A stretch of 64,000 nt of DNA, from the sequence record NC_047713.1; one strand, 5' to 3'. How positions within the stretch are numbered: the first letter of the stretch is position 1; the number at the start of each line of letters is the position of its first letter. The position numbers were made by a program, and so were the translations under genes. Positions 37,499-51,932 of this stretch are shown in pieces. Below the pieces are notes generated by a model, which searched no databases, was not told the DNA's origin, and worked only from the letters and a program-made list of their open reading frames with translations.

Positions 37499-37617
37499 TG
37501 TGACAGATGGGGAAGTGGCACACGCTTCCCCGCAAACCCCCTGAAACCTGTTATCTTATAGGAGTGGAGGGGATACACCCCCCACACCAAACAAACCCCG
37601 TACAACCCCTTCTAAGT
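37499..37617 (+). promoter_or_regulatory. Early element copy 9 (long-leader class)
   Basis: tgtgacaga-tgggga-agtggcaca; GGGGAAGTG/CGCTTCCCC hairpin; TGT-TATCTT. Confidence 0.75.
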
Positions 37618-37968
37618 ATGAATCTCAAGGCACTGGCACTCACTTCCGTTCTCGCCGTTGGTGGCATCTTTGGATCAGTTGCACCAGCCTCAGCTGGCAC
37701 CTGTTGGTTTGAAAACTACAGTGGTAGTTTGTCTCCAACATATTGTTCCACATATGTTAGGACTAACGCTAACGGACACAGGGTTGTGGATGTTGTTGAC
37801 TATGAAGGAACCGAAATGACGTTGGTATTCTGGACTGATAGTTCAGTTGAGATTCTCTACACTAACGGGCAATACAACGGACAAAGAGTTGTAGCAACTT
37901 GGTACTTCGATGATGATGGTGACCGTCGTATCTACGTTGGTGACTTTGAAATGAGTCTCCGAGTTTGA
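37618..37968 (+). CDS. Exported Cys-pair beta protein (paralog of 49635-49988)
   Basis: MNLKALALTSVLAVGGIFGSVAPASA signal peptide; CWF...C; W.FDDDGD...RV. Confidence 0.7.
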   Translation: MNLKALALTSVLAVGGIFGSVAPASAGTCWFENYSGSLSPTYCSTYVRTNANGHRVVDVVDYEGTEMTLVFWTDSSVEILYTNGQYNGQRVVATWYFDDDGDRRIYVGDFEMSLRV

Positions 37969-37975
37969 TAACACT

Positions 37976-38000
37976 GGAGGGTTTATAACCCTCCTTTTTT
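37976..38000 (+). terminator. Rho-independent terminator
   Basis: GGAGGGTT-TAT-AACCCTCC followed by T6. Confidence 0.8.
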
Positions 38001-38008
38001 ATGCCATG

Positions 38009-38037
38009 TTGCCATTGTAGTTGATATCTGTTATAAT
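38009..38037 (+). promoter_or_regulatory. Sigma70-like promoter without palindrome
   Basis: TTGCCA-17-TATAAT with extended TG. Confidence 0.75.
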
Positions 38038-38062
38038 ACCTTTGTCAGGATGAATTGGGATT

Positions 38063-38332
38063 ATGAAGCGCAAAGCAACAAGAAACTTTGATCTACGAAT
38101 TCGGTTGGATAACAACAAATGGAAGGTAGTTAAGTTAGAAGAAGGTAAGGTTATTACCCCAGCTAAGTTGAAAGAACTAAACCCCCGGCAGATAAGAGAT
38201 TACACTGAGCCAGTTGGTGAAGTTGATTTAAGTTTTCTATCAACAGAAGATAAGCGTTACTACCGTAAACATAAGTCTAATCCAGATATGGATTGGGCTC
38301 TAGATATTCTCTCCTACCCCCCAACTAAATGA
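38063..38332 (+). CDS. Hypothetical basic protein
   Basis: 89-aa ORF after a sigma70-like promoter. Confidence 0.6.
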   Translation: MKRKATRNFDLRIRLDNNKWKVVKLEEGKVITPAKLKELNPRQIRDYTEPVGEVDLSFLSTEDKRYYRKHKSNPDMDWALDILSYPPTK

Positions 38333-38493
38333 AAAGCAACTACCTTCTTCTAATGTCTCACTGGAAACGAGCAATGACTATGGGTAAGAAACAAGAAGCT
38401 GAAGACCTTATGTTACAAATCAAGGAGATAGTTTCTTCTGGTAATGTAACAGATAGGGAGTTGACAGCAGGTAAGTTTATTGGTTGGCGTTGA
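38329..38493 (+). CDS. Small hypothetical protein (54 aa)
   Basis: ATGA-coupled; MKSNYLLLMSHWKRAM... Confidence 0.55.
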   Translation: MKSNYLLLMSHWKRAMTMGKKQEAEDLMLQIKEIVSSGNVTDRELTAGKFIGWR

Positions 38494-38504
38494 TGTGTTA
38501 TAAT

Positions 38505-38529
38505 GGGGAGAGAAATCTCCCCTTTTTTT
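38505..38529 (+). terminator. Hairpin plus T-tract just before the HNH gene
   Basis: GGGGAGA-GAAA-TCTCCCC-T7. Confidence 0.65.
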
Positions 38530-38997
38530 ATGACAAGAGATTGGACTGGATATAAGAATGGAAAGCTCACTACTTTATATCAAGATGGAAGACATCCCAA
38601 AAGAAATGAAAGAATGTGGATGTGTGAGTGTGAATGTGGGAAAAGAAAGAGAGTTGCACAGAGTAAATTAAAGCAAACAAAATCTTGTGGTTGTAACAGA
38701 GGACCTAACAGCAATCCAAATGGGAATAACAATCACCCACTATACACAACTTGGTATGGAATGAAAACTAGATGCCTAAACCAGAATACCGGTAATTATA
38801 TGCGTTATGGTGGTAGGGGAATAACAATCTGTGAGGAGTGGAGAGATAACTTTCAGGCGTTTGTTGATTATGTTGGAGAGCGCCCAGAGGGACACACTTT
38901 GGATAGAATAAACAATGATGGTAACTACGAGCCAGGAAATGTTAGGTGGGCTACATCACAACAACAGGCACTAAACAGGCGTAACAACATTCACTAA
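38530..38997 (+). CDS. HNH homing endonuclease
   Basis: WMCECECG..SCGC; HPLYTTWYGMKTRC...YGGRGITIC..W...TLDRINNDGNYEPGNVRWAT. Confidence 0.9.
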   Translation: MTRDWTGYKNGKLTTLYQDGRHPKRNERMWMCECECGKRKRVAQSKLKQTKSCGCNRGPNSNPNGNNNHPLYTTWYGMKTRCLNQNTGNYMRYGGRGITICEEWRDNFQAFVDYVGERPEGHTLDRINNDGNYEPGNVRWATSQQQALNRRNNIH

Positions 38998-39025
38998 CAC
39001 ATTTTCCCTTATTTGACAAGCAGTG

Positions 39026-39173
39026 TTTTTCCATATTCTGGCAGGCTCACCCCTCCTACCACACCCAAAACACCCCCGATATGGTTTTTTACGAGTTTGG
39101 GTCTAGTGCCTGACTGGGTTCTCAGGGGCATCAAACCCCCATATCACCCTGATACCACCCCCCTACACAAAAC
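39026..39173. repeat. 148-bp non-coding repeat, copy A
   Basis: Gapless block-wise match to 48295-48442. Confidence 0.85.
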
Positions 39174-39183
39174 CACAAACCAT

Positions 39184-39290
39184 TGTGCCAGTTGGACTAG
39201 TGGCACAACCCCCCTAGGCAAGACCCCCCCCTATCGTGTATTGTATAGAAGTGGAGGGGAAACCCACCACACAAACCACTAACTAACCAA
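39184..39290 (+). promoter_or_regulatory. Early element copy 11 (long-leader class)
   Basis: tgtgccagt-tggact-agtggcaca; TAGGCA. Confidence 0.78.
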
Positions 39291-39473
39291 ATGAACCGCA
39301 TCCAACTCAACAAAGAACTCACACAACTTCGCGAAGAACGTGAAAAAGCACAACGTGAAGTTGATAACATCCAAGGATGTATGAATGAGTTAATGAGGAA
39401 GCGAAATGAGTTGGATATGGAACAGGAAGAACGTTCCGGTCAGATGTTATTTGACCAAATGTTTGGAGGTTGA
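39291..39473 (+). CDS. Small coiled-coil protein
   Basis: 60 aa, E/Q/R-rich heptads. Confidence 0.65.
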   Translation: MNRIQLNKELTQLREEREKAQREVDNIQGCMNELMRKRNELDMEQEERSGQMLFDQMFGG

Positions 39474-39502
39474 GTTAGTAACACAAACTATTCACTAAAA
39501 CA

Positions 39503-39748
39503 ATGAACACAACAACAATCAACATTCTCAAATCACTGGACATTCTTTCCACTTTGATTCAAGCATTCTATGAGATTGGATATGAACTTGGCACCTTCTA
39601 TCGCAACCATCTTCATTCACATGTAAAGTTTGCTATTGAATACTCTGGTCTTGTTATTCGTGAGACCTATGGTAACCGTCAAGAGTATTTCACAAAACTG
39701 AATAACCTTCGCAACCAAGCTGGTTCATACTTTGTCTATAGCGTGTGA
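39503..39748 (+). CDS. Hypothetical early protein
   Basis: 81 aa; TGA stop supplied by the next palindrome. Confidence 0.65.
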   Translation: MNTTTINILKSLDILSTLIQAFYEIGYELGTFYRNHLHSHVKFAIEYSGLVIRETYGNRQEYFTKLNNLRNQAGSYFVYSV

Positions 39749-39828
39749 CAGTTGAGGAAGTGGCACAAGCCCCCTAGGCAAACCCCTCAGGGGGTGCTAT
39801 ACTATATTCATACCAAAGGGAACCACCC
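39744..39828 (+). promoter_or_regulatory. Early element copy 12
   Basis: tgtgacagt-tgagga-agtggcaca; TAGGCA; TGC-TATACT. Confidence 0.9.
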
Positions 39829-40071
39829 ATGACTCACCTTTCTTTCACTCAAACCACACAAAACGCACTCCGTGAGTTGGATCGTTTAGAGGGAATAAAA
39901 GTTAGACTCGCTGGTCTGATTGTTGATCTTAAAGAGACACCATCAGCTAACTCTGAGACTTGGGTCAGGATGTATACTGACCGCCTCGTTTCTAATGTTA
40001 TCCCAGCCATCAAGGAAGTTAAAGAATATCTCACTAGTCAGGATGCACTAGTTACCAAAGCATCCAACTGA
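39829..40071 (+). CDS. Hypothetical early protein
   Basis: 80-aa single-gene cassette. Confidence 0.7.
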   Translation: MTHLSFTQTTQNALRELDRLEGIKVRLAGLIVDLKETPSANSETWVRMYTDRLVSNVIPAIKEVKEYLTSQDALVTKASN

Positions 40072-40148
40072 CAAACTGGCACAAGGGGGGTTGGCAAGAC
40101 CCCTCAAAACCCCTATACTAAACACATACCAAACAAAGGGAACAACCC
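40060..40148 (+). promoter_or_regulatory. Early element copy 13 (right arm only)
   Basis: actggcaca; GGGGGG-TTGGCA; TATACT. Confidence 0.8.
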
Positions 40149-40400
40149 ATGGCTCAACAAATCAAAATGAGAACACGAGTTTATTCTGATGTGACAGTAA
40201 GAGATCCACAGAGATATTATGATAGTGTGTTTCAGGGTTATAATGAGTATTGGACACTATTAGAATCAGATGATCCAAAGTGTATCTTAGTTGAGACTAC
40301 AGCACAATATGATCTAAACCCAGGGGGTTTGGATAACTTATATGATATGATTACACCTGAAATGTATCAGTCAACATACAGAACCTATATTGAAGTCTAA
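40149..40400 (+). CDS. Hypothetical early protein
   Basis: 83-aa single-gene cassette. Confidence 0.7.
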   Translation: MAQQIKMRTRVYSDVTVRDPQRYYDSVFQGYNEYWTLLESDDPKCILVETTAQYDLNPGGLDNLYDMITPEMYQSTYRTYIEV

Positions 40401-40402
40401 GA

Positions 40403-40485
40403 TGTGACAGTTGGGGAAGTGGCACACGCTTCCCCACAAACCACTCCATACCTGCTATACTAAACACATACCAAAGGAAACCAAC
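40403..40485 (+). promoter_or_regulatory. Early element copy 14
   Basis: tgtgacagt-tgggga-agtggcaca; GGGGAAGTG/CGCTTCCCC hairpin; TGC-TATACT. Confidence 0.88.
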
Positions 40486-40683
40486 ATGGTTATCGACACT
40501 GAAAACTATTTCACCACTGACAACGATCTTCTTCAGACAGTATCACAATTCATTCTCTCACTGAATAATAAATTGATCAGTCAGAATGCGAACTTTATGG
40601 AGTCTATTGGCGTTGATACTTTGACTGACTTCAACCAACAACTCATCCTTGAATGTGAAGAATACAAGTGTTATGATGTATAA
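40486..40683 (+). CDS. Hypothetical early protein
   Basis: ATG 40486 after AAGGA; the track start lies inside the element. Confidence 0.65.
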   Translation: MVIDTENYFTTDNDLLQTVSQFILSLNNKLISQNANFMESIGVDTLTDFNQQLILECEEYKCYDV

Positions 40684-40820
40684 TGAGATTACTTATTCTC
40701 TTCTTGTTTGTTACTGGGTTTCTAGTCCTTAGATTCGGAGTTGTCCCCCATGACAACTACGTATTCGATTGTGATAATATCCCACAAACAACAATCAACA
40801 CCATCGCCTGTGGTGGTTAA
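40683..40820 (+). CDS. Small membrane peptide (45 aa)
   Basis: MRLLILFLFVTGFLVLRFGVV..., TAATG-coupled. Confidence 0.5.
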   Translation: MRLLILFLFVTGFLVLRFGVVPHDNYVFDCDNIPQTTINTIACGG

Positions 40821-40843
40821 CACTCAACCTCAACTATTTCACC

Positions 40844-41353
40844 ATGACTGATACCAACAAGGCTCAAACAATTGAAGAGCTGAAAGCTGAAGTTTCTGAA
40901 CTGAAGGCAGCTAGGAAGGAAGAACTTCTGGCACAGGCAGAACAACGAAAGCAAGATGAGGAACTTCGTTCACTCGAACTTCAGAAACAAGCTCTAGAAA
41001 GTGGTTCCCTCCCCTCCCCCACAGGCACACCTCAGTCACTACAACGTAGGATGACTGATATTGAAAACGCACGAGTTCGCACCTGGGCATATGCACTAGG
41101 AGCCTATTTCACTGGTCCTATCATGCCAGCTGTGGTGGCTAATCGTACTAAGAACTGGACACCTTTCTGGGCTGGATTGGGTCTTGGCATTGTATCTCTC
41201 CCCCTAGCATTTGCTGACCTTGGTATCATCTCCTCTGTCCCTGCAGCTGCTTTAGGAACTGTACTTCAGGCTCAGAAATCTAACAAGAAGCGTGAGGAGT
41301 TGGGTATTGTTTCCCCTGAGGAAGCTGACCTTCTCCGTTTCAAACAGTTCTGA
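40844..41353 (+). CDS. Coiled-coil plus membrane protein
   Basis: N-terminal E/K/Q coiled coil; hydrophobic C-terminal helices. Confidence 0.7.
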   Translation: MTDTNKAQTIEELKAEVSELKAARKEELLAQAEQRKQDEELRSLELQKQALESGSLPSPTGTPQSLQRRMTDIENARVRTWAYALGAYFTGPIMPAVVANRTKNWTPFWAGLGLGIVSLPLAFADLGIISSVPAAALGTVLQAQKSNKKREELGIVSPEEADLLRFKQF

Positions 41354-41450
41354 TTAAGTTACATCTCTGACCTCCTCAGTTTATACTGACGACTAAACCA
41401 ACTGAGAGCGCTGGTCCCCTCTCACAACTCACCTTATCTAACTATCTACT

Positions 41451-41987
41451 ATGGCTATTTTCTCCGAAGAGTTCACCAACAGCATCAAGTCTAAAGTTGA
41501 TTCAGTGAAGGATAAATTCACAGGTATCAACATCGGGAAACAGAGTGTTGTTGCTATTGTGGGAGGTACGTTGGTATTCTCTACCCTCGCAGTTGGTGCA
41601 GTTGGTGCTACAGTTCGTCAGGTTGTTGGTTCTAACATGGCAAAACAATGTAATGTGGCTGTTGGTAACTATGTGGAGTTGGCTGAAGTTCAGGAAACCG
41701 AACTAGTGAGGGCTAATGGATATATTCAATCGGTTCTAGAAAACCCTTGGAGCGCCCTAGTCCTTGGTGCTAGGATGTCTGAGATGGCAGACGAGATGAG
41801 TGCTCGTTGGGATGAGATTGGTGAAGCTGATGATAACTATTTGGAGGCATGTGTTCCTGATAGTGACTTCAAACAATGGGTGTTTGGTGGATATGTTGAA
41901 GCCGATCGTGAAGCTAAGTGGGAAGCAGAATCTACCCTAGAAGATACTCGCCAAATCACAATCAAACTCTCTGAACAACTCGGATGA
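41451..41987 (+). CDS. Membrane-anchored helical protein
   Basis: TM segment VVAIVGGTLVFSTLAVGAVGA; acidic helical body. Confidence 0.7.
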   Translation: MAIFSEEFTNSIKSKVDSVKDKFTGINIGKQSVVAIVGGTLVFSTLAVGAVGATVRQVVGSNMAKQCNVAVGNYVELAEVQETELVRANGYIQSVLENPWSALVLGARMSEMADEMSARWDEIGEADDNYLEACVPDSDFKQWVFGGYVEADREAKWEAESTLEDTRQITIKLSEQLG

Positions 41988-42235
41988 ACAACCCTTTCGC
42001 CTCACTAACTACCGAAGAGTTTATCTCTCTATCTGATGCATGTGCTCTCTCTGAACAAATGTGGAGGGAGCGCTCCCGTTCTATAAAAGCAGGGGAGCCA
42101 CGTTGGTTTTTAGATGGCGAACCTATGTTCACTGAGGAGGAATGTCGCTCAGAAATGAAACGATATCGTGAGTTACAGAAACGAGTTTCCTGGTTCACCC
42201 TCACACCAGAGGAGAGGGAGGGTGTGCCAGTCTAA
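41984..42235 (+). CDS. Hypothetical protein
   Basis: ATGA-coupled; ends V-P-V in the next palindrome. Confidence 0.65.
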   Translation: MNNPFASLTTEEFISLSDACALSEQMWRERSRSIKAGEPRWFLDGEPMFTEEECRSEMKRYRELQKRVSWFTLTPEEREGVPV

Positions 42236-42304
42236 GAAGTGGCACAACCCCCCTAGACAAACCCCTCTTTTTCTGCTATACTATTCACATACAGACAAAA
42301 CACT
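42223..42304 (+). promoter_or_regulatory. Early element copy 15
   Basis: tgtgccagt-ctaaga-agtggcaca; TAGACA; TGC-TATACT. Confidence 0.88.
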
Positions 42305-43210
42305 ATGGCTAAGAATCTCCACCTAGAACACCCAGAAGACCAGCTCCTCACTGGTGACGATAGTGTCATCAGTTGGTTCTACGCAACCTCTAGTTCCTCT
42401 GTGAAGATGGATGGAGCTCCTGCTATTGTATGGGGAACTAACCCAGAAAATGGTGAGTTCTTTGTGGGAACTAAGTCAGTGTTTAATAAGAAGAAGATCA
42501 AGATATGTTATACCCAGAAAGATATTACAACCTTATATGGTCATCAACCTAATGTGGTTGCTATCCTTACCGCCTGTTTGGCATACCTCCCCCGCACTGA
42601 TGTAGTGTATCAGGGTGACTTTATTGGGTTTGGTGGTGATGATACCTATACCCCCAATACCGTCACCTATGTGTTCCCTGAGGTCATTCAGGAACGTGTT
42701 ATCATGGCACCCCACACTTTCTATGTGGGTGAGAAGATGACTGAGATGGATGCCTTCCCTATCTTATCCACTCTAGATGAATCACGTCACGTTCACTTTG
42801 TTCAACCTACCGTGGATATCTACAACAATAAGGCAAACTGGGAAGAGTTTCAGCGTTGTTATGATGAAGTGAAAGAGGTAGATGGTTTCCTAGGTATCAA
42901 GAGAGCCGCAGAGGCAAAGATCATCATCAACCAGTTACTCCGTAACAACAAGTATCTTAGTATTCCACTATTGACTGAGATCTTTGGTACTAAAGAGATG
43001 GCTATTCTGTACACCTTCGCACTACATGAGAAGTTCAGAATCCTTGAGGATGCTATCTACTACGATGGTCCCCAGTGTTTGTTAGATGGTGATGATGTAG
43101 AGGCTGAGGGTATTGTTAGAACCAACCAGTTTGGTTCTATGAAACTCGTCAATCGTTACATCTTCAGTGTAGCAAACTTCAACAACAGTAAGTTCAGAGA
43201 GGTGAAGTAA
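42305..43210 (+). CDS. Conserved phage protein with KxDG (ligase/nucleotidyltransferase motif I-like)
   Basis: MAKNLHLEHPED; SVKMDGAPAIVWG; YQGDF; EGIV; MKLVNR. Confidence 0.6.
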   Translation: MAKNLHLEHPEDQLLTGDDSVISWFYATSSSSVKMDGAPAIVWGTNPENGEFFVGTKSVFNKKKIKICYTQKDITTLYGHQPNVVAILTACLAYLPRTDVVYQGDFIGFGGDDTYTPNTVTYVFPEVIQERVIMAPHTFYVGEKMTEMDAFPILSTLDESRHVHFVQPTVDIYNNKANWEEFQRCYDEVKEVDGFLGIKRAAEAKIIINQLLRNNKYLSIPLLTEIFGTKEMAILYTFALHEKFRILEDAIYYDGPQCLLDGDDVEAEGIVRTNQFGSMKLVNRYIFSVANFNNSKFREVK

Positions 43211-43404
43211 TGGTTGACTTCGATACTCTAACCCACGAAGAACTAGAGAGACTATCTGATGACTGTGAGGACTTTCTTCTCCATAGAAATATACCTCTAA
43301 GGTCACATTCCTATGAGAATATCATCAGACATGCTATCTTGGAAGGATACCAACTATCTCGGTATCCTGGTGTGACACCTGGGAAACTGGCACAAGACCC
43401 CTAG
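43210..43404 (+). CDS. Hypothetical protein
   Basis: TAATG-coupled; reads through the next palindrome. Confidence 0.6.
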   Translation: MVDFDTLTHEELERLSDDCEDFLLHRNIPLRSHSYENIIRHAILEGYQLSRYPGVTPGKLAQDP

Positions 43405-43454
43405 ACAAACCAGACCACACCTGCTATACTATATTCATACCAAACAAACAACCC
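43371..43454 (+). promoter_or_regulatory. Early element copy 16
   Basis: tgtgacacc-tgggaa-actggcaca; TAGACA; TGC-TATACT. Confidence 0.85.
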
Positions 43455-43712
43455 ATGCAACTCACAGCACAACACGCAAACATCGTTGTTGATTTCTACC
43501 CTGTCAAGTACTCTGATGGCACTATCAGTGAGCGTCTAATGTATAAAACAGTGAAGTTCGTTGGTTCACCTGCATCTAAGTCATATATCAACAAAGAATC
43601 CTTTGAAAAGGAAGTTGATTCTCGTGTGTATGGTTTTGGTTATGAGGTAACTGATCTACATACAGAGCCACAACTCTTCAACTCTGCACTTGTTCAAACT
43701 CGCTGGTCATAA
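43455..43712 (+). CDS. Hypothetical early protein
   Basis: 85 aa after the element leader. Confidence 0.7.
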   Translation: MQLTAQHANIVVDFYPVKYSDGTISERLMYKTVKFVGSPASKSYINKESFEKEVDSRVYGFGYEVTDLHTEPQLFNSALVQTRWS

Positions 43713-43714
43713 GT

Positions 43715-43906
43715 ATGAATTACACACAACGGTTGTATGAGGCTGAACAACTCTCCACTATGTGTTACCTTTGTAATATTGACCTAACGGAATGTATTAC
43801 AGAGGTTTCTGATTACCTAGAGTTGGGTTATAATGACAGTAAAGATATTGCCTCAGGTACCTATAAAGTTCTCTCAACAATGAATCCCCATGAGCCTATC
43901 AAATGA
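43715..43906 (+). CDS. Hypothetical protein
   Basis: 63-aa ORF. Confidence 0.55.
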   Translation: MNYTQRLYEAEQLSTMCYLCNIDLTECITEVSDYLELGYNDSKDIASGTYKVLSTMNPHEPIK

Positions 43907-44249
43907 ATCAATGAGCAAGCTTGTCGATAACATTGCCTCTGATGTTTTCCATCTTATTGCTTCTGACCCATACTATACTGAGACCTTTATGAATCTATTA
44001 CCCGGTGCAATCACTGAGGTTATTGGTGATACTTCCCCTGAACTTATTGGTGAGTTGGGTGGTAGAATCATGGACAGAGTTGGGGTTGATGGATGTGATG
44101 TCAATTCCGATAAAGTATGGGAGGAGAGATATAGATCTCTGTTTCGTTATGTCAAAAACACATACGCATCAGAGTATGTTGATGGGGCAGAATATGGTCA
44201 GATGGGTACAATGTATGGAGATTTTACTAGTACCTCGGAGTTAGACTGA
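43890..44249 (+). CDS. Hypothetical protein (probable paralog of 46647-46871)
   Basis: LSNESMSKLVD...ASD...E..M.L pattern shared. Confidence 0.65.
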   Translation: MSLSNESMSKLVDNIASDVFHLIASDPYYTETFMNLLPGAITEVIGDTSPELIGELGGRIMDRVGVDGCDVNSDKVWEERYRSLFRYVKNTYASEYVDGAEYGQMGTMYGDFTSTSELD

Positions 44250-44452
44250 TGCCATCATTTACACCCTATGGTAGATACCAACTAACATCAGTTCAGGTAG
44301 ATTTGATCCTACACTGCATGAGTGAGTATAAAGGACTCACCACACAGGAAGATAACGAGAGGAGAAAGATTGTAGAAGAACTTAGCAACTCTTTTACTGA
44401 TACTGACCCATCAGATCCTTACCTAGATCATTACTATACTTGTGACTATTGA
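44249..44452 (+). CDS. Hypothetical protein
   Basis: TGATG-coupled 67-aa ORF. Confidence 0.55.
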   Translation: MPSFTPYGRYQLTSVQVDLILHCMSEYKGLTTQEDNERRKIVEELSNSFTDTDPSDPYLDHYYTCDY

Positions 44453-45152: not shown

Positions 45153-45344
45153 ATGAACCACAATAAGGTAGCAGAGGCTCTTCATGAAGAAGTAACTGAT
45201 TATATCTTTAAGAACCATTATCGCCATATCAAATCAGTTTATACTGATGTTGTTGAGGAATACATAGAGAGGGAAGTGGGTCCTCTAACTGAGAAGAACC
45301 ACAAACAACTAGTTAAACAACTCGTTAAATTCTACATCTCCTGA
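45153..45344 (+). CDS. Hypothetical protein
   Basis: 63-aa ORF. Confidence 0.55.
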   Translation: MNHNKVAEALHEEVTDYIFKNHYRHIKSVYTDVVEEYIEREVGPLTEKNHKQLVKQLVKFYIS

Positions 45345-45358
45345 TTGAGCTTTTCGTT

Positions 45359-45568
45359 ATGTCTTCACCATCAGCATTCACACCAGCATTAGGTCTAGAA
45401 GTTGAATACAGGGGCTTTGTGGGTTATATCAAGTTTATAGATGAAGAATATTTAACAGTGTGTGTGAAGAAGAAAGAGCACCAAATGTTTGGTGATGTTT
45501 GTATGGTTGTGTATCCAAGTCAGTGGGAACACATTAAACTAATGGGCGGACCTCACAGAGACCGCTAG
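45359..45568 (+). CDS. Hypothetical SH3-like small protein
   Basis: GLEVEYRGFVGYIKFIDEEYLTVCV beta pattern. Confidence 0.55.
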   Translation: MSSPSAFTPALGLEVEYRGFVGYIKFIDEEYLTVCVKKKEHQMFGDVCMVVYPSQWEHIKLMGGPHRDR

Positions 45569-45652
45569 GACAGTTGGAGAAGTGTCACAAGGGGGGTTCG
45601 CAACCCTCCTTTTCTATGCTATACTATATTCATACCAAAGGGAACCACCCCC
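45566..45652 (+). promoter_or_regulatory. Early element copy 17
   Basis: taggacagt-tggaga-agtgtcaca; TTCGCA; TGC-TATACT. Confidence 0.82.
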
Positions 45653-45799
45653 ATGACTATCAACCTCAAAAGTCTATTCATCACCACTTGTGTGGGTCTC
45701 ACCCTAATACTAGGGAGCTTCGCTTTTACCAGTGATTATGGTACTGAGACCGGGCGTGGCGAACAGACTGAGAGCCCTTACTACGGACCCGCTTTCTAA
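45653..45799 (+). CDS. Small membrane/exported peptide (48 aa)
   Basis: MTINLKSLFITTCVGLTLILGSFAF..., a cassette between two elements. Confidence 0.65.
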   Translation: MTINLKSLFITTCVGLTLILGSFAFTSDYGTETGRGEQTESPYYGPAF

Positions 45800-45867
45800 A
45801 GTGGCACAAGGGGGGTTGGCAAGACCCTCTACACCTGCTATACTAAACACATACCAAACAAGGAACC
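45785..45867 (+). promoter_or_regulatory. Early element copy 18 (right arm only)
   Basis: agtggcaca; GGGGGG-TTGGCA; TGC-TATACT. Confidence 0.8.
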
Positions 45868-46044
45868 ATGTTTAAACTTCAACTCAAATGGCAGAAAGAA
45901 GGTGAGTGGATTGATACAGTATACGCTCCTACAGAATACGCAACAGCTTTCTTTCGTTGGAGACAGTACCAAGAGCTTTGGGGTGATACTCACACCTATC
46001 GCCTCCTCGATGTGACACCTCAGGAAGTGGCACAAGCCTCCTAG
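45868..46044 (+). CDS. Small hypothetical protein (58 aa)
   Basis: MFKLQLKWQKEGEWIDTVY..., a cassette between two elements. Confidence 0.65.
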   Translation: MFKLQLKWQKEGEWIDTVYAPTEYATAFFRWRQYQELWGDTHTYRLLDVTPQEVAQAS

Positions 46045-46093
46045 GCAAACCACCCCACACCTGCTATACTAAACACATACCAAACAAAGAACC
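46011..46093 (+). promoter_or_regulatory. Early element copy 19
   Basis: tgtgacacc-tcagga-agtggcaca; TAGGCA; TGC-TATACT. Confidence 0.87.
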
Positions 46094-46375
46094 ATGAATT
46101 TCAAGTCCTTCCTTCTCTCCTCTCTCATCGTTACCACTGGGCTAGTAGCTTCAGCACCAGGAGCCAAAGCCGCTGAATGTTTCAATGGTGATGGATATCG
46201 GGTTTGTATGGAGAGCTTAGGCATGAATCGTTGGGAAGTATCCTTCGAGAACAACCATGGCTCAGAGTTTATGGAGGTTCAGTGTATTGGCAAGAGTGTG
46301 AGTGATTGGACCTCACGGGGTGATTTGAGTCAGTCTGAAGCACAGTATCTCGCAGAGGAATTCTGTTCCTGGTAA
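46094..46375 (+). CDS. Exported Cys-containing protein
   Basis: MNFKSFLLSSLIVTTGLVASAPGAKA signal peptide; four Cys. Confidence 0.72.
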   Translation: MNFKSFLLSSLIVTTGLVASAPGAKAAECFNGDGYRVCMESLGMNRWEVSFENNHGSEFMEVQCIGKSVSDWTSRGDLSQSEAQYLAEEFCSW

Positions 46376-46408
46376 GATACAACAACTAACCAACTCTACA
46401 CTATTATC

Positions 46409-46567
46409 ATGTTTGTATCCTTCACTGAAATCCAAGACTACATTCGCGAAGACCAATACACATATAGTGAGCGTCAGTTCCGCTCACGCAAATACAACAA
46501 AAACGAACGTCGTTATCAGCGTCGTCAGAAGCAACAACAAAGAGAACGCAACTACGATAGCGTGTGA
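46409..46567 (+). CDS. Small R/Q-rich protein (52 aa)
   Basis: MFVSFTEIQDYIRE...; TGA in the next palindrome. Confidence 0.6.
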   Translation: MFVSFTEIQDYIREDQYTYSERQFRSRKYNKNERRYQRRQKQQQRERNYDSV

Positions 46568-46646
46568 CAGTTGGAGAAGTGGCACACGCTTCTCCACAAA
46601 CCCCTCAGGGGGTGCTATACTATATTCATACCAAAGGGAACCACCC
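46563..46646 (+). promoter_or_regulatory. Early element copy 20
   Basis: tgtgacagt-tggaga-agtggcaca; GGAGAAGTG/CGCTTCTCC hairpin; TGC-TATACT. Confidence 0.9.
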
Positions 46647-46871
46647 ATGACCACCACCACTCCAAACCTCTACAACGAAGCTATCCGTCGTTTGGCTGAC
46701 GGGTTCTCCTCAGAGTTCGCTGAGTTCTGTGCAGGAGACGAGAGGGTTCACGAGATCATGATGGAACTCGCTAGTGAGTTCGTAGAAACCAATATCCCTG
46801 TAGTGAGTGAGGACAGCCAGACTGACGTGGCATCTGAGCTCCTCATGAGTATCACAGTCACCAAGGTGTGA
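46647..46871 (+). CDS. Hypothetical early protein
   Basis: ATG 46647 after the element; the track's longer ORF spans the element and is an artefact. Confidence 0.7.
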   Translation: MTTTTPNLYNEAIRRLADGFSSEFAEFCAGDERVHEIMMELASEFVETNIPVVSEDSQTDVASELLMSITVTKV

Positions 46872-46951
46872 CAGTCTAGGAACTGGCACAAGGGGGGTTG
46901 GCAACACCCCCCAAAACCTCTATACTAAACACATACCAAACAACCCAGACC
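46867..46951 (+). promoter_or_regulatory. Early element copy 21
   Basis: tgtgacagt-ctagga-actggcaca; TTGGCA; TATACT. Confidence 0.88.
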
Positions 46952-47500
46952 ATGAACTTCAAGAAACTCCTCCTTTCCACTCTCGCACTTGGTTCAGTTG
47001 TAGCCCCTTCAGCAAACGCTGGTTATACCTATGAGGGTTATCACTTGATGGATGGTTCTGACTTTCCTGGTTATGAGAGAGTGGCAACCCCAATGATTCA
47101 GGCTCTCAATGAAATGGGTGTTCCTGTTGTTGATGGTGGTAAGAATAACGTAGAAATGTGTATTCCTGAAGAGGAAAAGATGACTCTTGGTTTCTACGTT
47201 CCAGCATCCAATGTGATGGTTATCTGCACCAAGTCTATCCCAGGTTGGCTCCAGATGGAGACACTTACCCACGAAACAGTTCATGTCATCCAAGACGCAA
47301 GAGCTGGTATTGATAACGGAGATTTGGGAGAGGCACCAACCGATCACCTTATCACCCTCGCTAATGAGATGGATCCCGATAAGATGAATATCATCTACAG
47401 CCTCTACGATGAGTCTGATTACGCAGTAGAGATTGAAGCTTTCTACTTTGAAACAGAACCCCAGGCGGTTATGAATGAGATCCAGAAGTGGGCATTCTGA
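46952..47500 (+). CDS. Exported zinc-metallopeptidase-like protein (HEXXH)
   Basis: MNFKKLLLSTLALGSVVAPSANA signal peptide; LTHETVHVIQD; downstream EIEA. Confidence 0.7.
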   Translation: MNFKKLLLSTLALGSVVAPSANAGYTYEGYHLMDGSDFPGYERVATPMIQALNEMGVPVVDGGKNNVEMCIPEEEKMTLGFYVPASNVMVICTKSIPGWLQMETLTHETVHVIQDARAGIDNGDLGEAPTDHLITLANEMDPDKMNIIYSLYDESDYAVEIEAFYFETEPQAVMNEIQKWAF

Positions 47501-47542
47501 TACACTAAGTAACACTCACCAAACACACTAACTAACAACATC

Positions 47543-47929
47543 ATGGGCACACGTTCACGCATCGGTTATCAACTTCCAACTGGCAATATCGTTTCTGTGT
47601 ATCATCATTGGGATTCATATCCTACGTGGTTGGGTAAGAGACTCACCAAAAACTACATCACTGATAAAACCATCACCGAACTGATTGATGGTGGTGATAT
47701 GTCATCTATCGAGAGTAATCGCGACTGGGATCTTAATGAAGTTGCCCCACATGTTCAGTATTATTCACAACGTGGTGACACTGGATGTGAACCCCTCCTT
47801 CACAAAAACCAAAGAGAGTTTATCAAAACCACTGTAGACTGTTGGGGTGAGTATTCCTACTTATACAGGAATGGACGTTGGTTCTGTTATGATGAGAAGG
47901 GTAAGTCTGTTTCACTGAAGAACTTATGA
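47543..47929 (+). CDS. Conserved phage hypothetical protein
   Basis: MGTRSRIG...SVYHHWDSYP..LG..L, a widespread phage family pattern. Confidence 0.75.
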   Translation: MGTRSRIGYQLPTGNIVSVYHHWDSYPTWLGKRLTKNYITDKTITELIDGGDMSSIESNRDWDLNEVAPHVQYYSQRGDTGCEPLLHKNQREFIKTTVDCWGEYSYLYRNGRWFCYDEKGKSVSLKNL

Positions 47930-48294
47930 TTAGCAAACTGTTTTCACTATCTCTTGTTCTTGCGGGTTCTATCTTACCCGCACATGCATACCCCAATATC
48001 GTATATTGGGAACGCATTGATTGTAACCTCATCACCGAAACTATCCAGAAGTGTGATAGGTACAATGGGCAGAATGGAGTTTTCATCGAATCATACTACC
48101 TGGACATATACACAAACGAACATAGCTTTATAGATCCACGCGAACCGGAAATAGTTGTACCTGATGTTATTGAAGAAGAACTCTATATTGTTGAACCTGT
48201 GTTAGAAGATGAGACACTAGATGATATTCAACCAGATGTAGAATACAACCAACCGATAACAACATCAGACCCACTCCTGAATGATAGTTACTGA
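47926..48294 (+). CDS. Exported protein with acidic tail
   Basis: MISKLFSLSLVLAGSILPAHA signal peptide; Cys pair. Confidence 0.65.
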   Translation: MISKLFSLSLVLAGSILPAHAYPNIVYWERIDCNLITETIQKCDRYNGQNGVFIESYYLDIYTNEHSFIDPREPEIVVPDVIEEELYIVEPVLEDETLDDIQPDVEYNQPITTSDPLLNDSY

Positions 48295-48442
48295 TTTTTC
48301 CATATTCCTGTCGGCAACCACCTCCTACCATACCCCCTGCCAAACCGATATGGATTTTTCACCTTTCCCGTCTAGTGGCTCACTGGTATCTCAGCGAGGC
48401 ACAAATGAGATTTCACCCCCATACCACCCCTCTGACCAAAAC
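48295..48442. repeat. 148-bp non-coding repeat, copy B
   Basis: Gapless block-wise match to 39026-39173. Confidence 0.85.
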
Positions 48443-48447
48443 GGATC

Positions 48448-48759
48448 ATGAAACGCTACGGACTTTATTGGCTGAGAGCTATCACCCTAGGTGCTGGGCT
48501 AAACTTTGTTCTGACTGGTTATCTCATGGGTCACCAAAAGTGGAAGTTTCAACATGCAGCTCCACTCTCAGCGTTTATCTGTGTGAATCTATCGTATGTG
48601 GCGGATCGTCTTATCTTTGGTGATAAGAAGGAACCTGAAGATTTAGATCCAGATACTATTGTTATATCAACCCCACACTGTTGCCCCGTATGTTCAGAGT
48701 ATCCTTGCACTTGTGACAGTTGGGAAAGTGGCACAAGTCCCCTAGGCAACACCCTCTGA
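48448..48759 (+). CDS. Hypothetical two-TM protein with Cys-rich tail
   Basis: Two hydrophobic segments; CCPVC..YPCTC; reads into the next element. Confidence 0.55.
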   Translation: MKRYGLYWLRAITLGAGLNFVLTGYLMGHQKWKFQHAAPLSAFICVNLSYVADRLIFGDKKEPEDLDPDTIVISTPHCCPVCSEYPCTCDSWESGTSPLGNTL

Positions 48760-48795
48760 ACCTGCTATACTAAACACATACCAAAGGAACCAACC
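48712..48795 (+). promoter_or_regulatory. Early element copy 22
   Basis: tgtgacagt-tgggaa-agtggcaca; TAGGCA; TGC-TATACT. Confidence 0.88.
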
Positions 48796-48993
48796 ATGAA
48801 AGTCTCTCAGGAAGTTTTCAAGAGTTACATTCAGATACTGGATGAAAACACACAAACATCATGGGATATCCTAAATGTTTTGAATGATATTGTTAGAGGT
48901 GACTGGGATAACTCAGTCCAGTATTGTTTGGAAAATCCATCAGGCGACCCTATGGATGATTTCAACTACGCAGGCAGTCGCCACCACTATTGA
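48796..48993 (+). CDS. Hypothetical early protein
   Basis: 65 aa after the element. Confidence 0.65.
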   Translation: MKVSQEVFKSYIQILDENTQTSWDILNVLNDIVRGDWDNSVQYCLENPSGDPMDDFNYAGSRHHY

Positions 48994-49026
48994 TAACCAA
49001 CTCACCACACTAACTAACACAAACTC

Positions 49027-49248
49027 ATGACCCTCACTGATTTACAAACAGCACACCCTTATGGGGAGTATTCAGAGCGACATGGTTGTTATTATACAGT
49101 AGACTACGATTCGGAGATAGGATACTTCCGTCAGTTGAATGATAGAACTTTTGAAACTGATTGGAACTGGGTTGATTTTGATACTATGAGTGAAAAAGAA
49201 GCAGAGTATATTTGTGAAGTAGCAAAGACTATTTCTACACGTTCCTGA
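49027..49248 (+). CDS. Hypothetical protein
   Basis: 73 aa after an A/C-rich leader. Confidence 0.65.
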   Translation: MTLTDLQTAHPYGEYSERHGCYYTVDYDSEIGYFRQLNDRTFETDWNWVDFDTMSEKEAEYICEVAKTISTRS

Positions 49249-49276
49249 TACTAACCACCCACACTAACTAACAACT

Positions 49277-49561
49277 ATGACACGCACTCCAATGACAGTC
49301 ACCCTCAAGCGTAGCGAATGGGAATGTTATACAGACACTCCTGATACTATCATCGAAACCATCAACACATACTTCTCTTATGTGTTATCAACTAAAGATA
49401 ACGCGTTTGATGCACAAGCTGAGATATTTAAGTTTATGGGTATGTTTAGTGAGTTTGGGTTTATGGATAGTGAGTGCCTAGAATGTGCAACTAGAGTTAT
49501 CAACAGATATTTCGATTCATACCTCTCCCGATGGAGCCAGGTGGGTGATGTGACAGTCTAG
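49277..49561 (+). CDS. Hypothetical protein
   Basis: 94 aa; ends V-T-V in the next palindrome. Confidence 0.65.
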   Translation: MTRTPMTVTLKRSEWECYTDTPDTIIETINTYFSYVLSTKDNAFDAQAEIFKFMGMFSEFGFMDSECLECATRVINRYFDSYLSRWSQVGDVTV

Positions 49562-49634
49562 GAACTGGCACACGCTTCTCCGCAAACCCCTCAGGGGGTG
49601 CTATACTATATTCATACCAAAGGAACCAACCCCC
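49549..49634 (+). promoter_or_regulatory. Early element copy 23
   Basis: tgtgacagt-ctagga-actggcaca; TGC-TATACT. Confidence 0.88.
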
Positions 49635-49988
49635 GTGAACTTCAAGTCTTTAGCACTCTCTTCAGTTATCGCCGTTTCCTCTATCTTTGGAACCGTATCA
49701 GGAGCTGAAGCAAAACCCGCCAATTGCTGGTTTGAAGATCAAACAACACCCATCACAGCCGCCAACTGTAACATCACTAAAATGTATCATGATGGATCTA
49801 TCTTTGATTGGGTTGGCACCTACTTCCTTGTCAGTGAGTTGGGAGCACTAATCTACCTGAAAGACAACGGAACCTTTATCGCAGAACCTATCAATGGTGA
49901 TCCAGAGGAGTACGGAACCTGGCGTTATGATCATGAGGGTGATATTCAAATGAGGATGGGAGGAACTTACTTTACCTTCCGAGTGTGA
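49635..49988 (+). CDS. Exported Cys-pair beta protein (paralog of 37618-37968)
   Basis: MNFKSLALSSVIAVSSIFGTVSGAEA signal peptide; CWF...C; WRYDHEGD...RV. Confidence 0.7.
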   Translation: MNFKSLALSSVIAVSSIFGTVSGAEAKPANCWFEDQTTPITAANCNITKMYHDGSIFDWVGTYFLVSELGALIYLKDNGTFIAEPINGDPEEYGTWRYDHEGDIQMRMGGTYFTFRV

Positions 49989-50067
49989 CAGTTGAGGAAG
50001 TGGCACACGCTTCCCCCAAAACCCCTCAGGGGGTGCTATACTATATTCATACCAAACAAGGAAACCA
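49984..50067 (+). promoter_or_regulatory. Early element copy 24
   Basis: tgtgacagt-tgagga-agtggcaca; TGC-TATACT. Confidence 0.88.
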
Positions 50068-50334
50068 ATGTTCCCACACCTCCACATCTCTGAATCAAAC
50101 CTCGGACCTCACACCTCCATGTTTTTCAAAGTATCATCACAACCACAAGATGAGTGGCAGAATGGCATTTTCCATAACTCACCTTATGGCATCTTTCACC
50201 TTCATTCTGAGAAAGGTGTTTATAAGTTGGAACTATCTTCCTCAGGTTTGAATACTCCTAAGTTTCGCAAGTGTAAGTGTGAAGATGAACTTACCGCACT
50301 CACTAAGATTCGTCAGTGGATGGATAAGTTCTGA
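50068..50334 (+). CDS. Conserved phage hypothetical protein
   Basis: DEWQNGIFHNSPYGIF...KFRKCK. Confidence 0.7.
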   Translation: MFPHLHISESNLGPHTSMFFKVSSQPQDEWQNGIFHNSPYGIFHLHSEKGVYKLELSSSGLNTPKFRKCKCEDELTALTKIRQWMDKF

Positions 50335-50369
50335 TATTATCTAACACAAACCACTCACAACAAACTATC

Positions 50370-50543
50370 ATGAACCGACTAGAACTACTGACCCAACGTG
50401 AACAACTGATGGAGAGGATTGACTCTATCTGTGATGAATTCTTTTATAAGAACTATAATGGAGATACGTCAGAAGCAGATGAATTAGTTCGTATTCTATG
50501 TGATGCTGTTTGTGAAACCATAGACCCAGCGGGCATGGTGTGA
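50370..50543 (+). CDS. Small hypothetical protein (57 aa)
   Basis: MNRLELLTQREQLMERIDSIC...; TGA in the next palindrome. Confidence 0.65.
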   Translation: MNRLELLTQREQLMERIDSICDEFFYKNYNGDTSEADELVRILCDAVCETIDPAGMV

Positions 50544-50622
50544 CAGTTGGACTAGTGGCACAAGCTTCTCCGCAAACCCCTCCTCACCTGCTATACTATA
50601 TTCATACCAAAGGAAACCGACC
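50539..50622 (+). promoter_or_regulatory. Early element copy 25
   Basis: tgtgacagt-tggact-agtggcaca; TGC-TATACT. Confidence 0.88.
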
Positions 50623-50886
50623 ATGTTCCAAGTCTGTATTGAAGATTCACTAGATCACCGTCATACAGTTGATGAGTTTGAGACTCTGGAAGAAGCACAA
50701 GAGTGTTATAACGAGTGTTTGAAGATTGGTCCTGAGGGTTATGAACTCTCTGTTGAGTTAGAGCAAGTTATTGGCGACCATGATGATTATATTTCAATTG
50801 ATTTCACCGAGTGGTTTACACAAGAGGAGTGGGATGTGGCTCATCCATGGAATGAGAAGGAAGGAGTATGGGAAAACATAGACTGA
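50623..50886 (+). CDS. Hypothetical acidic early protein
   Basis: 87-aa single-gene cassette. Confidence 0.7.
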   Translation: MFQVCIEDSLDHRHTVDEFETLEEAQECYNECLKIGPEGYELSVELEQVIGDHDDYISIDFTEWFTQEEWDVAHPWNEKEGVWENID

Positions 50887-50970
50887 TGTGACAGTTGGAG
50901 AAGTGGCACACGCTTCTCCGCAAGACCCGCCTCACCTGCTATACTATATTCATACCAAAGGGAACCACCC
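50887..50970 (+). promoter_or_regulatory. Early element copy 26
   Basis: tgtgacagt-tggaga-agtggcaca; GGAGAAGTG/CGCTTCTCC hairpin; TGC-TATACT. Confidence 0.9.
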
Positions 50971-51261
50971 ATGACCACCAACACCCTCATCAGACTCGGC
51001 ACTCTCGGTTTTGGGGCTTTCGCAATGACGGTTAACCTGGCACCCATGAGCACTCCGGTCGTTCCTCTCCTTTCCCAACTTACTCCAGTTTACGCTGAGG
51101 TCACTCAGTTTGACAACAGCCAATACAAGTTTGTTTCTCATCAGGAGTTTGTTTTCATGAATAAAACAAGAGAGAACGCACTAGAAGAAATTGATAAAAT
51201 TGTGGAAGACTTTGAGCGTGAGATCGATGAAGCTTTCTCACCAGACAACTTTCGTTTCTGA
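50971..51261 (+). CDS. Hypothetical protein, copy 1
   Basis: 96 aa with a hydrophobic N-terminus. Confidence 0.65.
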   Translation: MTTNTLIRLGTLGFGAFAMTVNLAPMSTPVVPLLSQLTPVYAEVTQFDNSQYKFVSHQEFVFMNKTRENALEEIDKIVEDFEREIDEAFSPDNFRF

Positions 51262-51270
51262 TAGGGGGCT

Positions 51271-51356
51271 TGTGCCACCTAAATAAGTGGCACACGCTTC
51301 CCCGCAAGACCCGCCTCACCTGCTATACTATTCACATACCAAACAAAGGAAACCAA
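51271..51356 (+). promoter_or_regulatory. Early element copy 27
   Basis: tgtgccacc-taaata-agtggcaca; TGC-TATACT. Confidence 0.85.
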
Positions 51357-51611
51357 ATGACCACCACCCAAACCAAAACCGAGTTCCTCACCGAGGCAAT
51401 GATCGAACAGGTGAACAACCTCTGGAAGGTTTATAACGTGGAGTCAGGTCACACCATCACCCCACTCCTTAAGTATGAAGTGGCTAAGAAGTATATCAAG
51501 GTCTATCGTCTTGATGTTGTCAATGGTGAGATTAAGGGAACCACCCATGACCACCAACACCCTCATCAGACTCGGCACTCTCGGTTTTGGGGCTTTCGCA
51601 ATGACGGTTAA
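51357..51611 (+). pseudogene. Truncated/chimeric copy of 51933-52274
   Basis: Identical up to ...VNGEI, then switches at the duplication junction to KGTTHDH... Confidence 0.8.
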
Positions 51612-51837
51612 CCTGGCACCCATGAGCACTCCGGTCGTTCCTCTCCTTTCCCAACTTACTCCAGTTTACGCTGAGGTCACTCAGTTTGACAACAGCCAAT
51701 ACAAGTTTGTTTCTCATCAGGAGTTTGTTTTCATGAATAAAACAAGAGAGAACGCACTAGAAGAAATTGATAAAATTGTGGAAGACTTTGAGCGTGAGAT
51801 CGATGAAGCTTTCTCACCAGACAACTTTCGTTTCTGA
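51547..51837 (+). CDS. Hypothetical protein, copy 2
   Basis: Exact duplicate of 50971-51261. Confidence 0.6.
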   Translation: MTTNTLIRLGTLGFGAFAMTVNLAPMSTPVVPLLSQLTPVYAEVTQFDNSQYKFVSHQEFVFMNKTRENALEEIDKIVEDFEREIDEAFSPDNFRF

Positions 51838-51846
51838 TAGGGGGCT

Positions 51847-51932
51847 TGTGCCACCTAAATAAGTGGCACACGCTTCCCCGCAAGACCCGCCTCACCTGCT
51901 ATACTATTCACATACCAAACAAAGGAAACCAA
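51847..51932 (+). promoter_or_regulatory. Early element copy 28 (duplicate of 27)
   Basis: Within the tandem duplication. Confidence 0.8.

Follow-up and report, generated by a model that had tools for sequence, protein, structure and literature searches.

This study concerns a repeated intergenic cassette in the first 64 kb of the genome of Synechococcus phage ACG-2014f_Syn7803C8 (64,000 nucleotides, hereafter the window), a T4-like cyanomyovirus of the genus Atlauavirus with a genome of 223 kb. Positions 37000-52000 of the window are 99.9% identical to KJ019058/NC_047713, the coordinates of the record being those of the window, and match 43 further records of the ACG-2014f group at 90-99% identity (45 records in total). 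Between 27 and 56 kb, the annotated record holds > 80 small genes, almost all annotated as hypothetical and almost all on the + strand, which is the usual look of the early, hyperplastic region of a T4-like phage. Using the motif TGGCACA as an anchor, we found approximately 26 copies of the cassette in this region, all intergenic and on the + strand, from 27567 to 54926; just two other clear copies of its palindrome occur in the whole 223-kb genome outside 27.5-54.9 kb.

The cassettes are 82-91 base pairs (bp) long, except two of 107-119 bp, and 21 of them align nearly gap-free. Each begins with a 24-bp near-palindrome, TGTG(A/C)CA-N10-TGGCACA, often the source of the upstream gene's stop codon. 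It is followed by a variable stretch, such that 29-30 nucleotides (nt) separate TGGCACA from the −10 box; this stretch includes a weak −35-like motif (TTGGCA, TAGGCA or CCGCAA). The third part is an extended −10 box, TGCTATACT, which reads TATACT with a preceding TG in most copies, and the fourth is a conserved leader, A(AACA/TATT)CATACCAAAGGAACC, with a ribosome-binding site and an ATG 24-33 nt past the −10 box. The sequence GTGGCACA occurs 20 times in the window versus 1.95 expected. In 17 of 23 cases, the upstream gene ended within the element: its stop was the TGA of TGTGACA in six, lay in the spacer in seven and fell past the right arm in four; the cassette thus provides a stop codon, a predicted promoter, a ribosome-binding site and a start context.

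The copies fall into three classes by the stretch that follows TGGCACA. In class A, the loop of a G-run/C-run hairpin holds the −35-like TTGGCA, and TTTTTT follows the hairpin in two copies; class B carries AGCCCCCTAGGCAA, with a hairpin of the form CCCCCT..AGGGGG; and class C carries CGCTTC(C/T)CC, the 5′ arm of its hairpin sitting in the palindrome spacer. A consensus scan for σ70 promoters returned TTGGCA/TAGGCA/TAGACA-N17-TATACT, often with the TG extension, the N17-spaced −35 being found in class A and B copies. We compared 11 genomes, i.e. the window and ten relatives (labelled W05, W09, W10, W11, W12 etc.), using the region from 26 to 58 kb of each relative, and sampled the wider family in uncultured viral (IMG/VR) contigs. 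The copies in the window are as follows.

27567-27657, + strand: G5/C5 hairpin followed by TTTTTT, in the form of an intrinsic terminator; −10 box TATAAT; 3′ of a tail protein gene.
30445-30529, + strand: TTGGCA lies in the loop of hairpin AGGG..CCCT; the left-arm TGA serves as the stop codon of the upstream gene.
33055-33137, + strand: class B (AGCCCCCTAGGCAA), spacer GTCTAGGAAG; conversion tract in isolate W11.
36233-36317, + strand: hairpin GGGGGG..CCCCCC with TTTTTT, terminator-like; −10 box CATAAT.
36681-36762, + strand: class A hairpin GGGGGCT/AGCCCCC.
37499-37617, + strand: class C; matched hairpin 37509-37517/37523-37531 (GGGGAAGTG/CGCTTCCCC); atypical −10 box TATCTT; long leader.
39184-39290, + strand: perfect palindrome TGTGCCA-N10-TGGCACA; spacer GTTGGACTAG; long leader.
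39744-39828, + strand: class B with module CCCCTCAGGGGGTGC (hairpin CCCCCT..AGGGGG); module replaced in isolate W10.
40060-40148, + strand: class A hairpin; left arm degenerate.
40403-40485, + strand: class C; matched hairpin 40413-40421/40427-40435 (GGGGAAGTG/CGCTTCCCC).
42223-42304, + strand: perfect palindrome, class B-like; right-hand parent of the W09 hybrid element.
43371-43454, + strand: class B-like, with no stable hairpin.
45785-45867, + strand: class A hairpin; left arm degenerate.
46011-46093, + strand: class B-like (AGCCTCCTAGGCAA).
46563-46646, + strand: class C; matched hairpin with A:T at pair 3 (46573-46581/46587-46595; GGAGAAGTG/CGCTTCTCC); module CCCCTCAGGGGGTGC.
46867-46951, + strand: class A hairpin GGGGGG..CCCCCC, loop with the −35-like TTGGCA; spacer GTCTAGGAAC.
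48712-48795, + strand: class B-like, with no stable hairpin; the upstream open reading frame runs through the palindrome.
49549-49634, + strand: class C 3′ arm CGCTTCTCC with non-matching spacer GTCTAGGAAC; module CCCCTCAGGGGGTGC.
49984-50067, + strand: class C GAGGAAGTG/CGCTTCCCC, eight of nine pairs, A-C mismatch at pair 2; module CCCCTCAGGGGGTGC.
50539-50622, + strand: AGCTTCTCC with spacer GTTGGACTAG, hairpin broken; orthologue in W05 and W09 GTTGGAGAAG, hairpin formed.
50887-50970, + strand: class C; matched hairpin 50897-50905/50911-50919 (GGAGAAGTG/CGCTTCTCC); left-hand parent of the W11/W12 hybrid.
51271-51356, + strand: perfect palindrome; non-matching spacer CCTAAATAAG joined to a class C 3′ arm; the W11/W12 hybrid derives its right-hand part from this copy.
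51847-51932, + strand: exact duplicate of the 51271 copy, via a 576-bp tandem duplication.
52275-52356, + strand: class A hairpin; upstream of a helicase gene.
54843-54926, + strand: perfect palindrome; middle divergent.

An initial annotation of the stretch had described these elements as mosaics in which a covarying hairpin is broken by recombination. The strings it quoted were all present where it had placed them, in numbers far over chance. It had not recognised the elements as cassettes of the promoter-early stem-loop (PeSL) kind discussed below, and its list is extended here by the relative at 50539 (AGCTTCTCC, spacer GGACTAG) and by the duplicate at 51847.

The copies recombine with each other, and genes are gained, lost and swapped as cassettes. 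Among 21 paralogues, the pairwise homoplasy index (PHI) test gave p < 0.001 at a window of 5 and p = 0.0014 at a window of 10, informative sites that lie near each other being more compatible than distant ones; the aligned copies thus bore out the recombination that had been proposed from a few of them. Distances in the spacer, class, module and leader blocks were weakly correlated with each other (Mantel r 0.07-0.27), and left and right halves are therefore largely unlinked. Specifically, one spacer occurs with classes A, B and C, one module occurs with classes B and C, and all four combinations are present both for spacer type and class and for class and downstream module. The CCCCTCAGGGGGTGC module, which had been said to be common to the copies at 39744, 46563, 49549 and 49984, occurs four times in the window versus 0 expected, at exactly these copies.

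Every isolate was cut at its elements, and the inter-element segments clustered into 30 units. (A greedy pairwise chaining of BLAST hits across isolates was confounded by the repeats; this cassette map was used instead.) The 11 isolates differ by whole inter-element units: one unit is found in W10 only and another in four isolates; three adjacent units are absent from W09; W11 and W12 have two units swapped for two others and lack one more; and a duplicated unit is present in the window isolate alone. We observed hybrid elements at two junctions, with crossover intervals that could be mapped; in addition, one cassette was inserted and one replaced. The hybrid at W11:49691/W12:49911 takes its left from the 50887 copy and its right from the 51271 copy; the gene in between is lost, and the crossover falls within the shared block TGGCACA..TATACTAT. 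Likewise, in the hybrid at W09:39415, the left stems from the 39744 copy and the right from the 42223 copy; ∼2.5 kb is lost, and the crossover falls in CAAACCCCTC. The comparison of flanks in related genomes that the initial annotation had suggested thus revealed whole-cassette differences, with hybrid elements at the deletions in sister isolates.

Orthologous elements also differ by clustered tracts of two to seven bases, the alternative state of which is found verbatim in paralogues (loci 33072, 39761, 40420 and 50556). For example, the module of the 39744 copy changes from CAGGGGGTG to CCTCACCTG in W10. At the 50.5-kb locus, the spacer reads GGAGAAG in two isolates (Syn7803C21 and C19), which makes the hairpin, and GGACTAG in eight of nine others, which breaks it; these alleles correspond exactly to the event that had been inferred from the window, i.e. 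a hairpin broken in a recombinant. The proposal that crossovers occur at or near the TGGCACA arm held with regard to recombination itself (PHI, hybrids and tracts) but not with regard to its place: exchange points fall in all conserved blocks, namely the arms, GCAA, and the −10 box with the leader. The copies have identical blocks of 10-40 bp in common. Environmental RNA-library contigs have joints inside elements as well, which is weak evidence because these contigs carry no transcript ends and may represent DNA or cross-mapping of paralogues.

We then considered RNA structure. When the 53 nt from the left arm to the −10 box of 24 window copies were folded and compared with dinucleotide shuffles, the mean z was −1.19, with 46% of copies below −1.64; the position of the stem differs from copy to copy, and ∼30% of the window copies have no stable stem. 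The same bias was seen in 178 family members from IMG/VR, where the gap between palindrome and −10 box had a mean z of −1.15 versus −0.27 for controls. A minimum free energy ≤ −10 was reached by 38% of these gap regions and by 3.5% of control stretches 300 nt downstream (Mann-Whitney p = 6e-6). Thus, the family as a whole is statistically characterised by a GC-rich stem-loop between the upstream stop and the −10 box, and class C is one way to make one. Rfam covariance models gave no match at E ≤ 1 on either strand of 26000-57000.

The four matched class C copies (37499, 40403, 46563 and 50887) form a 9-bp stem, including one T·G pair, with the loop GCACA. The motif CGCTTC(C/T)CC occurs eight times in the window, on the + strand only, versus 0.18 expected. 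Among 18 unique class C haplotypes from the 11 isolates, pair 3 is G:C in eight and A:T in seven, and pair 8 is T·G in 14 and T:A in four. Shuffled 3′ arms equalled the observed pairing in 10 of 5000 trials, a test that overstates the evidence because the copies are related. Searching IMG/VR with the last spacer base and its partner left free yielded 56 matches, in which pair 7 was C:G 49 times, G:C seven times and non-complementary in no case; both states were found on near-identical downstream contexts. When no base of the spacer was fixed in the search, pairing extended over eight or nine of the nine positions in 40 of 47 elements, and seven were broken. The double changes at pairs 3 and 7, together with the change from wobble to Watson-Crick at one pair, support covariation of the class C hairpin. 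This agrees with the compensatory change originally noted between the 37499/40403 pair (GGGGAAGTG/CGCTTCCCC) and the 46563/50887 pair (GGAGAAGTG/CGCTTCTCC), and extends it to other phage lineages. Of the three copies that had been listed with non-matching spacers, those at 49549 and 51271 are indeed mismatched, but the one at 49984 retains eight of nine pairs, with one A-C mismatch.

The palindrome itself behaves differently. In 178 unique family members, its conserved core is T-G-T-G-(A/C)-C-A-(G/C)-T-T-nnnn-A-A-(G/C)-T-G-G-C-A-C-A, followed by the −10-like box at a fixed distance. Positions 5 and 20 form an A-G mismatch in 64% of copies, and the symmetric positions 8 and 17 carry the same base in 124 (83 G,G and 41 C,C) versus complementary bases in 39 (Fisher p < 0.001). 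The common mismatch at 5/20 and the anti-complementary 8/17 make an RNA stem unlikely, and a protein-binding site, of either an activator or an operator, would be the better reading. The same-base preference at 8/17, seen in IMG/VR loci L117-L198 and the window copies, could reflect an asymmetric protein site or ancient sub-families. In class C copies, positions 8 and 17 both covary with the third base of the 3′ arm.

Other known sites were considered as candidates. A σ54 promoter (TGGCAC-N5-TTGC) was rejected, since the distance between TGGCAC and TTGG in class A copies is, as judged by eye, ∼8 nt and not 5; cyanobacteria are not known to have σ54. CRP, NtcA and CIRCE sites appear to misfit in spacing and half-sites.

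The palindrome followed by 25-35 nt and TATACT was found in 82 IMG/VR contigs versus ∼1 expected by a rough estimate, many of them with arrays of several copies. (A 14-mer scan of the same contigs returned mostly single chance matches and was left unused save for a few loci later found to be real.) Among cultured phages, S-SKS1, the nearest other one, has few copies, none of them with the hairpin, while in the T4-like cyanophage Syn9 this architecture recurs in at least four copies at 46-53 kb (a variant palindrome, 29 nt, and TATTCT); a handful in Syn9 compares with ∼26 here. Doron and colleagues reportedly described a novel regulatory element of early genes in Syn9 in 2016 (in ISME J), which may overlap with the palindrome. 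In one environmental lineage (IMG/VR locus L120, on the − strand, and its relatives), a start codon lies 6-7 nt after a −10-like box (TTACAATAGCAGTATG); an mRNA of this type would be leaderless or nearly so.

The closest known counterparts are the PeSLs, which were described in the phage pair RB49/phi1 and later in T4/PST and KVP40/nt-1 (Arbiol et al., 2010, PMC2839356; Comeau et al., 2014, PMC4122927). A PeSL is a small cassette with a strong σ70-like promoter and a G-run/C-run stem-loop that terminates transcription, both activities having been tested; PeSLs concentrate in hyperplastic regions, where they mediate insertion, deletion and replacement of small genes with mini-circles as intermediates (PMC2839356; PMC4122927). 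The cassettes described here likewise are short, conserved and intergenic, lie in a hyperplastic early region between small, mostly unknown genes on one strand, and point in the direction of transcription. They share a match to the σ70-like promoter, the G-run/C-run stem-loop, and the ribosome-binding site and start codon at the 3′ end, and insertions, deletions and replacements among close relatives are bounded by cassettes, with hybrid cassettes at the junctions. They differ in that the place held in PeSLs by an AT-rich stretch upstream of their promoter is here taken by the TGTG(A/C)CA-N10-TGGCACA palindrome. Moreover, the stem-loop, which lies upstream of the promoter in PeSLs, here lies inside it: it occupies the interval from the palindrome to the −10 box, overlaps the −35 position and, in class C, extends into the palindrome spacer. 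The −35 is weak, the −10 extended and the host a cyanobacterium. Finally, promoter and terminator activity and mini-circles were demonstrated for PeSLs, whereas the present cassettes are known by their sequence.

Two other systems resemble the cassettes in part. As in intrinsic terminators, a GC-rich hairpin directly follows a stop codon, with a T-run at 27567 and 36233; in contrast, class C and most other copies have no T-run, and many hairpins begin ∼5 nt past the stop. As in integron attC arrays, an imperfect palindrome accompanies each of the small, promoterless-looking genes, and genes turn over by the cassette, but here every cassette has a predicted promoter of its own, and crossovers are spread over homologous blocks instead of falling at a single point. 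We know of no integrase in this phage group.

Collectively, these data make it quite probable that the array is a cyanophage variant of PeSL cassettes, shuffled by recombination and with an optional hairpin. Host RNA polymerase of the σ70 type would start early transcripts at every cassette, while the palindrome would bind a protein, acting as an activator site or an operator. In RNA reading through from the upstream gene, the GC-rich stem-loop might attenuate transcription or stabilise the 3′ end. The homologous recombination of the phage swaps sequence between copies via their identical blocks; this exchange produces gene-conversion tracts as well as deletion, insertion or replacement of whole gene cassettes, and generates mosaic combinations that at times split the two class C arms.

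Several observations weigh against parts of this reading. The promoter, terminator and protein-binding roles are predicted from sequence features, the RNA runs that cover the region being assembled contigs that are uninformative on transcript starts and stops, and the −35 of class C copies is poor. Polymorphism of the elements (1.35%) does not differ significantly from that of flanking genes (1.05%), so that hypervariability is no signature here. The isolate genomes are short-read assemblies, and single-isolate rearrangements could therefore be assembly errors; the key configurations are nonetheless present in two or more isolates. As for the class C hairpin, the stem at the 37.5-kb locus has an uncompensated G/A polymorphism, with the mismatched allele in five of the eight isolates grouped there; mismatched arms are kept in most or all isolates at 49.5, 50.5 and 51.3 kb; the terminal pair is frequently lost; and the hairpin was found in only two of 161 unique members of the first broad family sample. 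No U-tract follows class C hairpins, which run into GCAAACC or ACAAACC, a T-run being present at the 27567 and 36233 copies only. Since the distance between the two arms is only 17 nt, part of their association can be explained by co-conversion and shared descent.

The strongest alternative is that the class C inverted repeat lacks a function of its own. Its arms would have stayed matched through joint copying, by duplication or gene conversion, over the 17 nt, and the apparent compensation would consist of a few chance double changes or of template-switch correction of a quasi-palindrome. Shared descent is possible for the matched copies, which are paralogues, and the persistence of mismatched copies at three loci in nearly all isolates, the uncompensated polymorphisms at pairs 2 and 9 and the rarity of the hairpin in the first broad sample all fit this explanation. 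It accounts poorly for full double changes at pair 3 (G:C to A:T) and pair 7 (G:C to C:G) alongside the third pair's change from wobble to Watson-Crick, for both pair-7 states on near-identical downstream contexts, and for the absence of half-changed intermediates from the 56 environmental matches, although position 17 flips freely between G and C across the family. We regard a functionless repeat as unlikely, and selection on class C pairing as somewhat the better bet. Such selection is not strong, given the uncompensated and mismatched alleles. That the hairpin is specifically a terminator or attenuator is doubtful; the data lend modest support to an optional structure, one of several alternative GC-rich stem-loops.

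At the other extreme, a dedicated protein of the phage or its host might bind at the palindrome, both switching early cassettes on or off and making them recombination hotspots; the array would be a purpose-built cassette exchange system of marine cyanophages. The class C hairpin would then be a translation-coupled attenuator, a role suggested by the start of its 5′ arm ∼5 nt after the stop codon. We offer this as speculation with a small chance of being correct. Still less probable is an integron-like variant, in which the inverted repeats act in DNA, the 24-bp palindrome and the overlapping class C palindrome binding a dedicated protein that drives site-specific or hotspot recombination of cassettes. 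The strong conservation and systematic asymmetry of the imperfect palindrome, the gene turnover by cassette among isolates, and the speculation of Arbiol et al. on a helper protein that binds the stem-loop would be compatible with it. However, the exchange intervals are scattered (TGGCACA..TATACTAT, CAAACCCCTC, after the −10 box, and in the spacer) and the extent of the tracts varies, as expected for general homologous recombination; no recombinase was seen, though no protein search was made.

That the isolate differences are assembly artefacts caused by the repeated cassettes is hardly credible: repeats do share identical blocks of up to ∼40-60 nt, and the 576-bp duplication is seen in one isolate alone, but ordinary sequencing reads are longer than these blocks, the informative configurations are shared by two to four isolates that were assembled independently, and the environmental contigs, weak as their evidence is, have joints inside elements too. 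Least plausible of all is the absence of recombination, with copies diverging by independent point mutation after duplication; although the elements are short and show many single-base differences, the tracts of two to seven clustered differences identical to other copies at orthologous loci, the exact coincidence of hybrid elements with loss of the intervening genes, the PHI result and the presence of all four spacer/class and class/module combinations speak against it, and neither congruent histories of the two halves nor independent point mutation, the two outcomes named beforehand as fatal to a mosaic origin, was found.

A number of further features were observed in and around the array. 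The 576-bp duplication is a perfect tandem one (50958-51533 = 51534-52109), seen in the window isolate only among the 11 compared; one end falls within the leader of the 50887 cassette and the other within the gene at 51933-52274, the joint shows no homology, and a truncated hybrid gene results. It could be a recent event or an assembly artefact. The 51847 copy was made by this duplication and is therefore not independent of the 51271 copy.

In the cassettes at 37552-37617 and 39239-39290, an atypical −10 box (TATCTT and TATTGT) is followed by a long, conserved G-rich/C-rich leader (TATAGGAGTGGAGGGGATACACCCCCC...), which may be a small RNA or a structured leader. Leaders of the TATAGGAGTGGAGGGGATACACCCCCC type also follow the palindrome in Syn9 (NC_008296, ∼53049-53100) and in IMG/VR contigs, e.g. 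L137 and L180. A second, shorter intergenic joint, ..CACACTAACTAACA.., stands right before start codons that lack a cassette (39270-39290, 47525-47542, 49010-49026 and 49260-49276); environmental contigs of two runs link 49004 to 49259, dropping the gene between two CACACTAACTAACA-type joints.

A non-coding element of ∼150 bp is present twice (39025-39175 and 48298-48445); its aligned stretches are 78% identical, with the equally spaced conserved blocks TTTTTCCATATTC, CCTCCTACCA, CCGATATGG, GTCTAGTG and ATACCACCCC. The gene for an HNH endonuclease at 38530-38997 is, together with its flanks (38491-39076), absent in six of ten related isolates, which is the presence/absence pattern of a homing endonuclease. 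It is flanked by predicted terminators of the classical hairpin and T-run form at 37976-37994 and 38505-38522, and by a predicted promoter, TTGCCA-N17-TATAAT, at 38009.

PeSL shuffling has been documented in a few phage pairs, from enterobacteria and vibrios; here such cassettes form a dense array in a cyanophage lineage. In cyanophage S-PM2, PeSL-like motifs were sparse and too few to invoke PeSL shuffling (PMC4503421), and the population genomics of the present isolates made no mention of promoters, PeSLs or palindromes (PMC5112629). The array provides unusually direct population evidence for cassette shuffling. The ∼45 sequenced ACG-2014f isolates preserve a history of deletions, insertions and replacements along with conversion tracts, which makes a natural population available for measuring rates and crossover positions. 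The matched and mismatched hairpin alleles that occur naturally at one locus constitute a ready test of hairpin function. Beyond this phage group, palindrome and −10 box are combined in the same way in Syn9 and in many contigs of uncultured cyanophages, which suggests that these phages have an early-gene control element in common.

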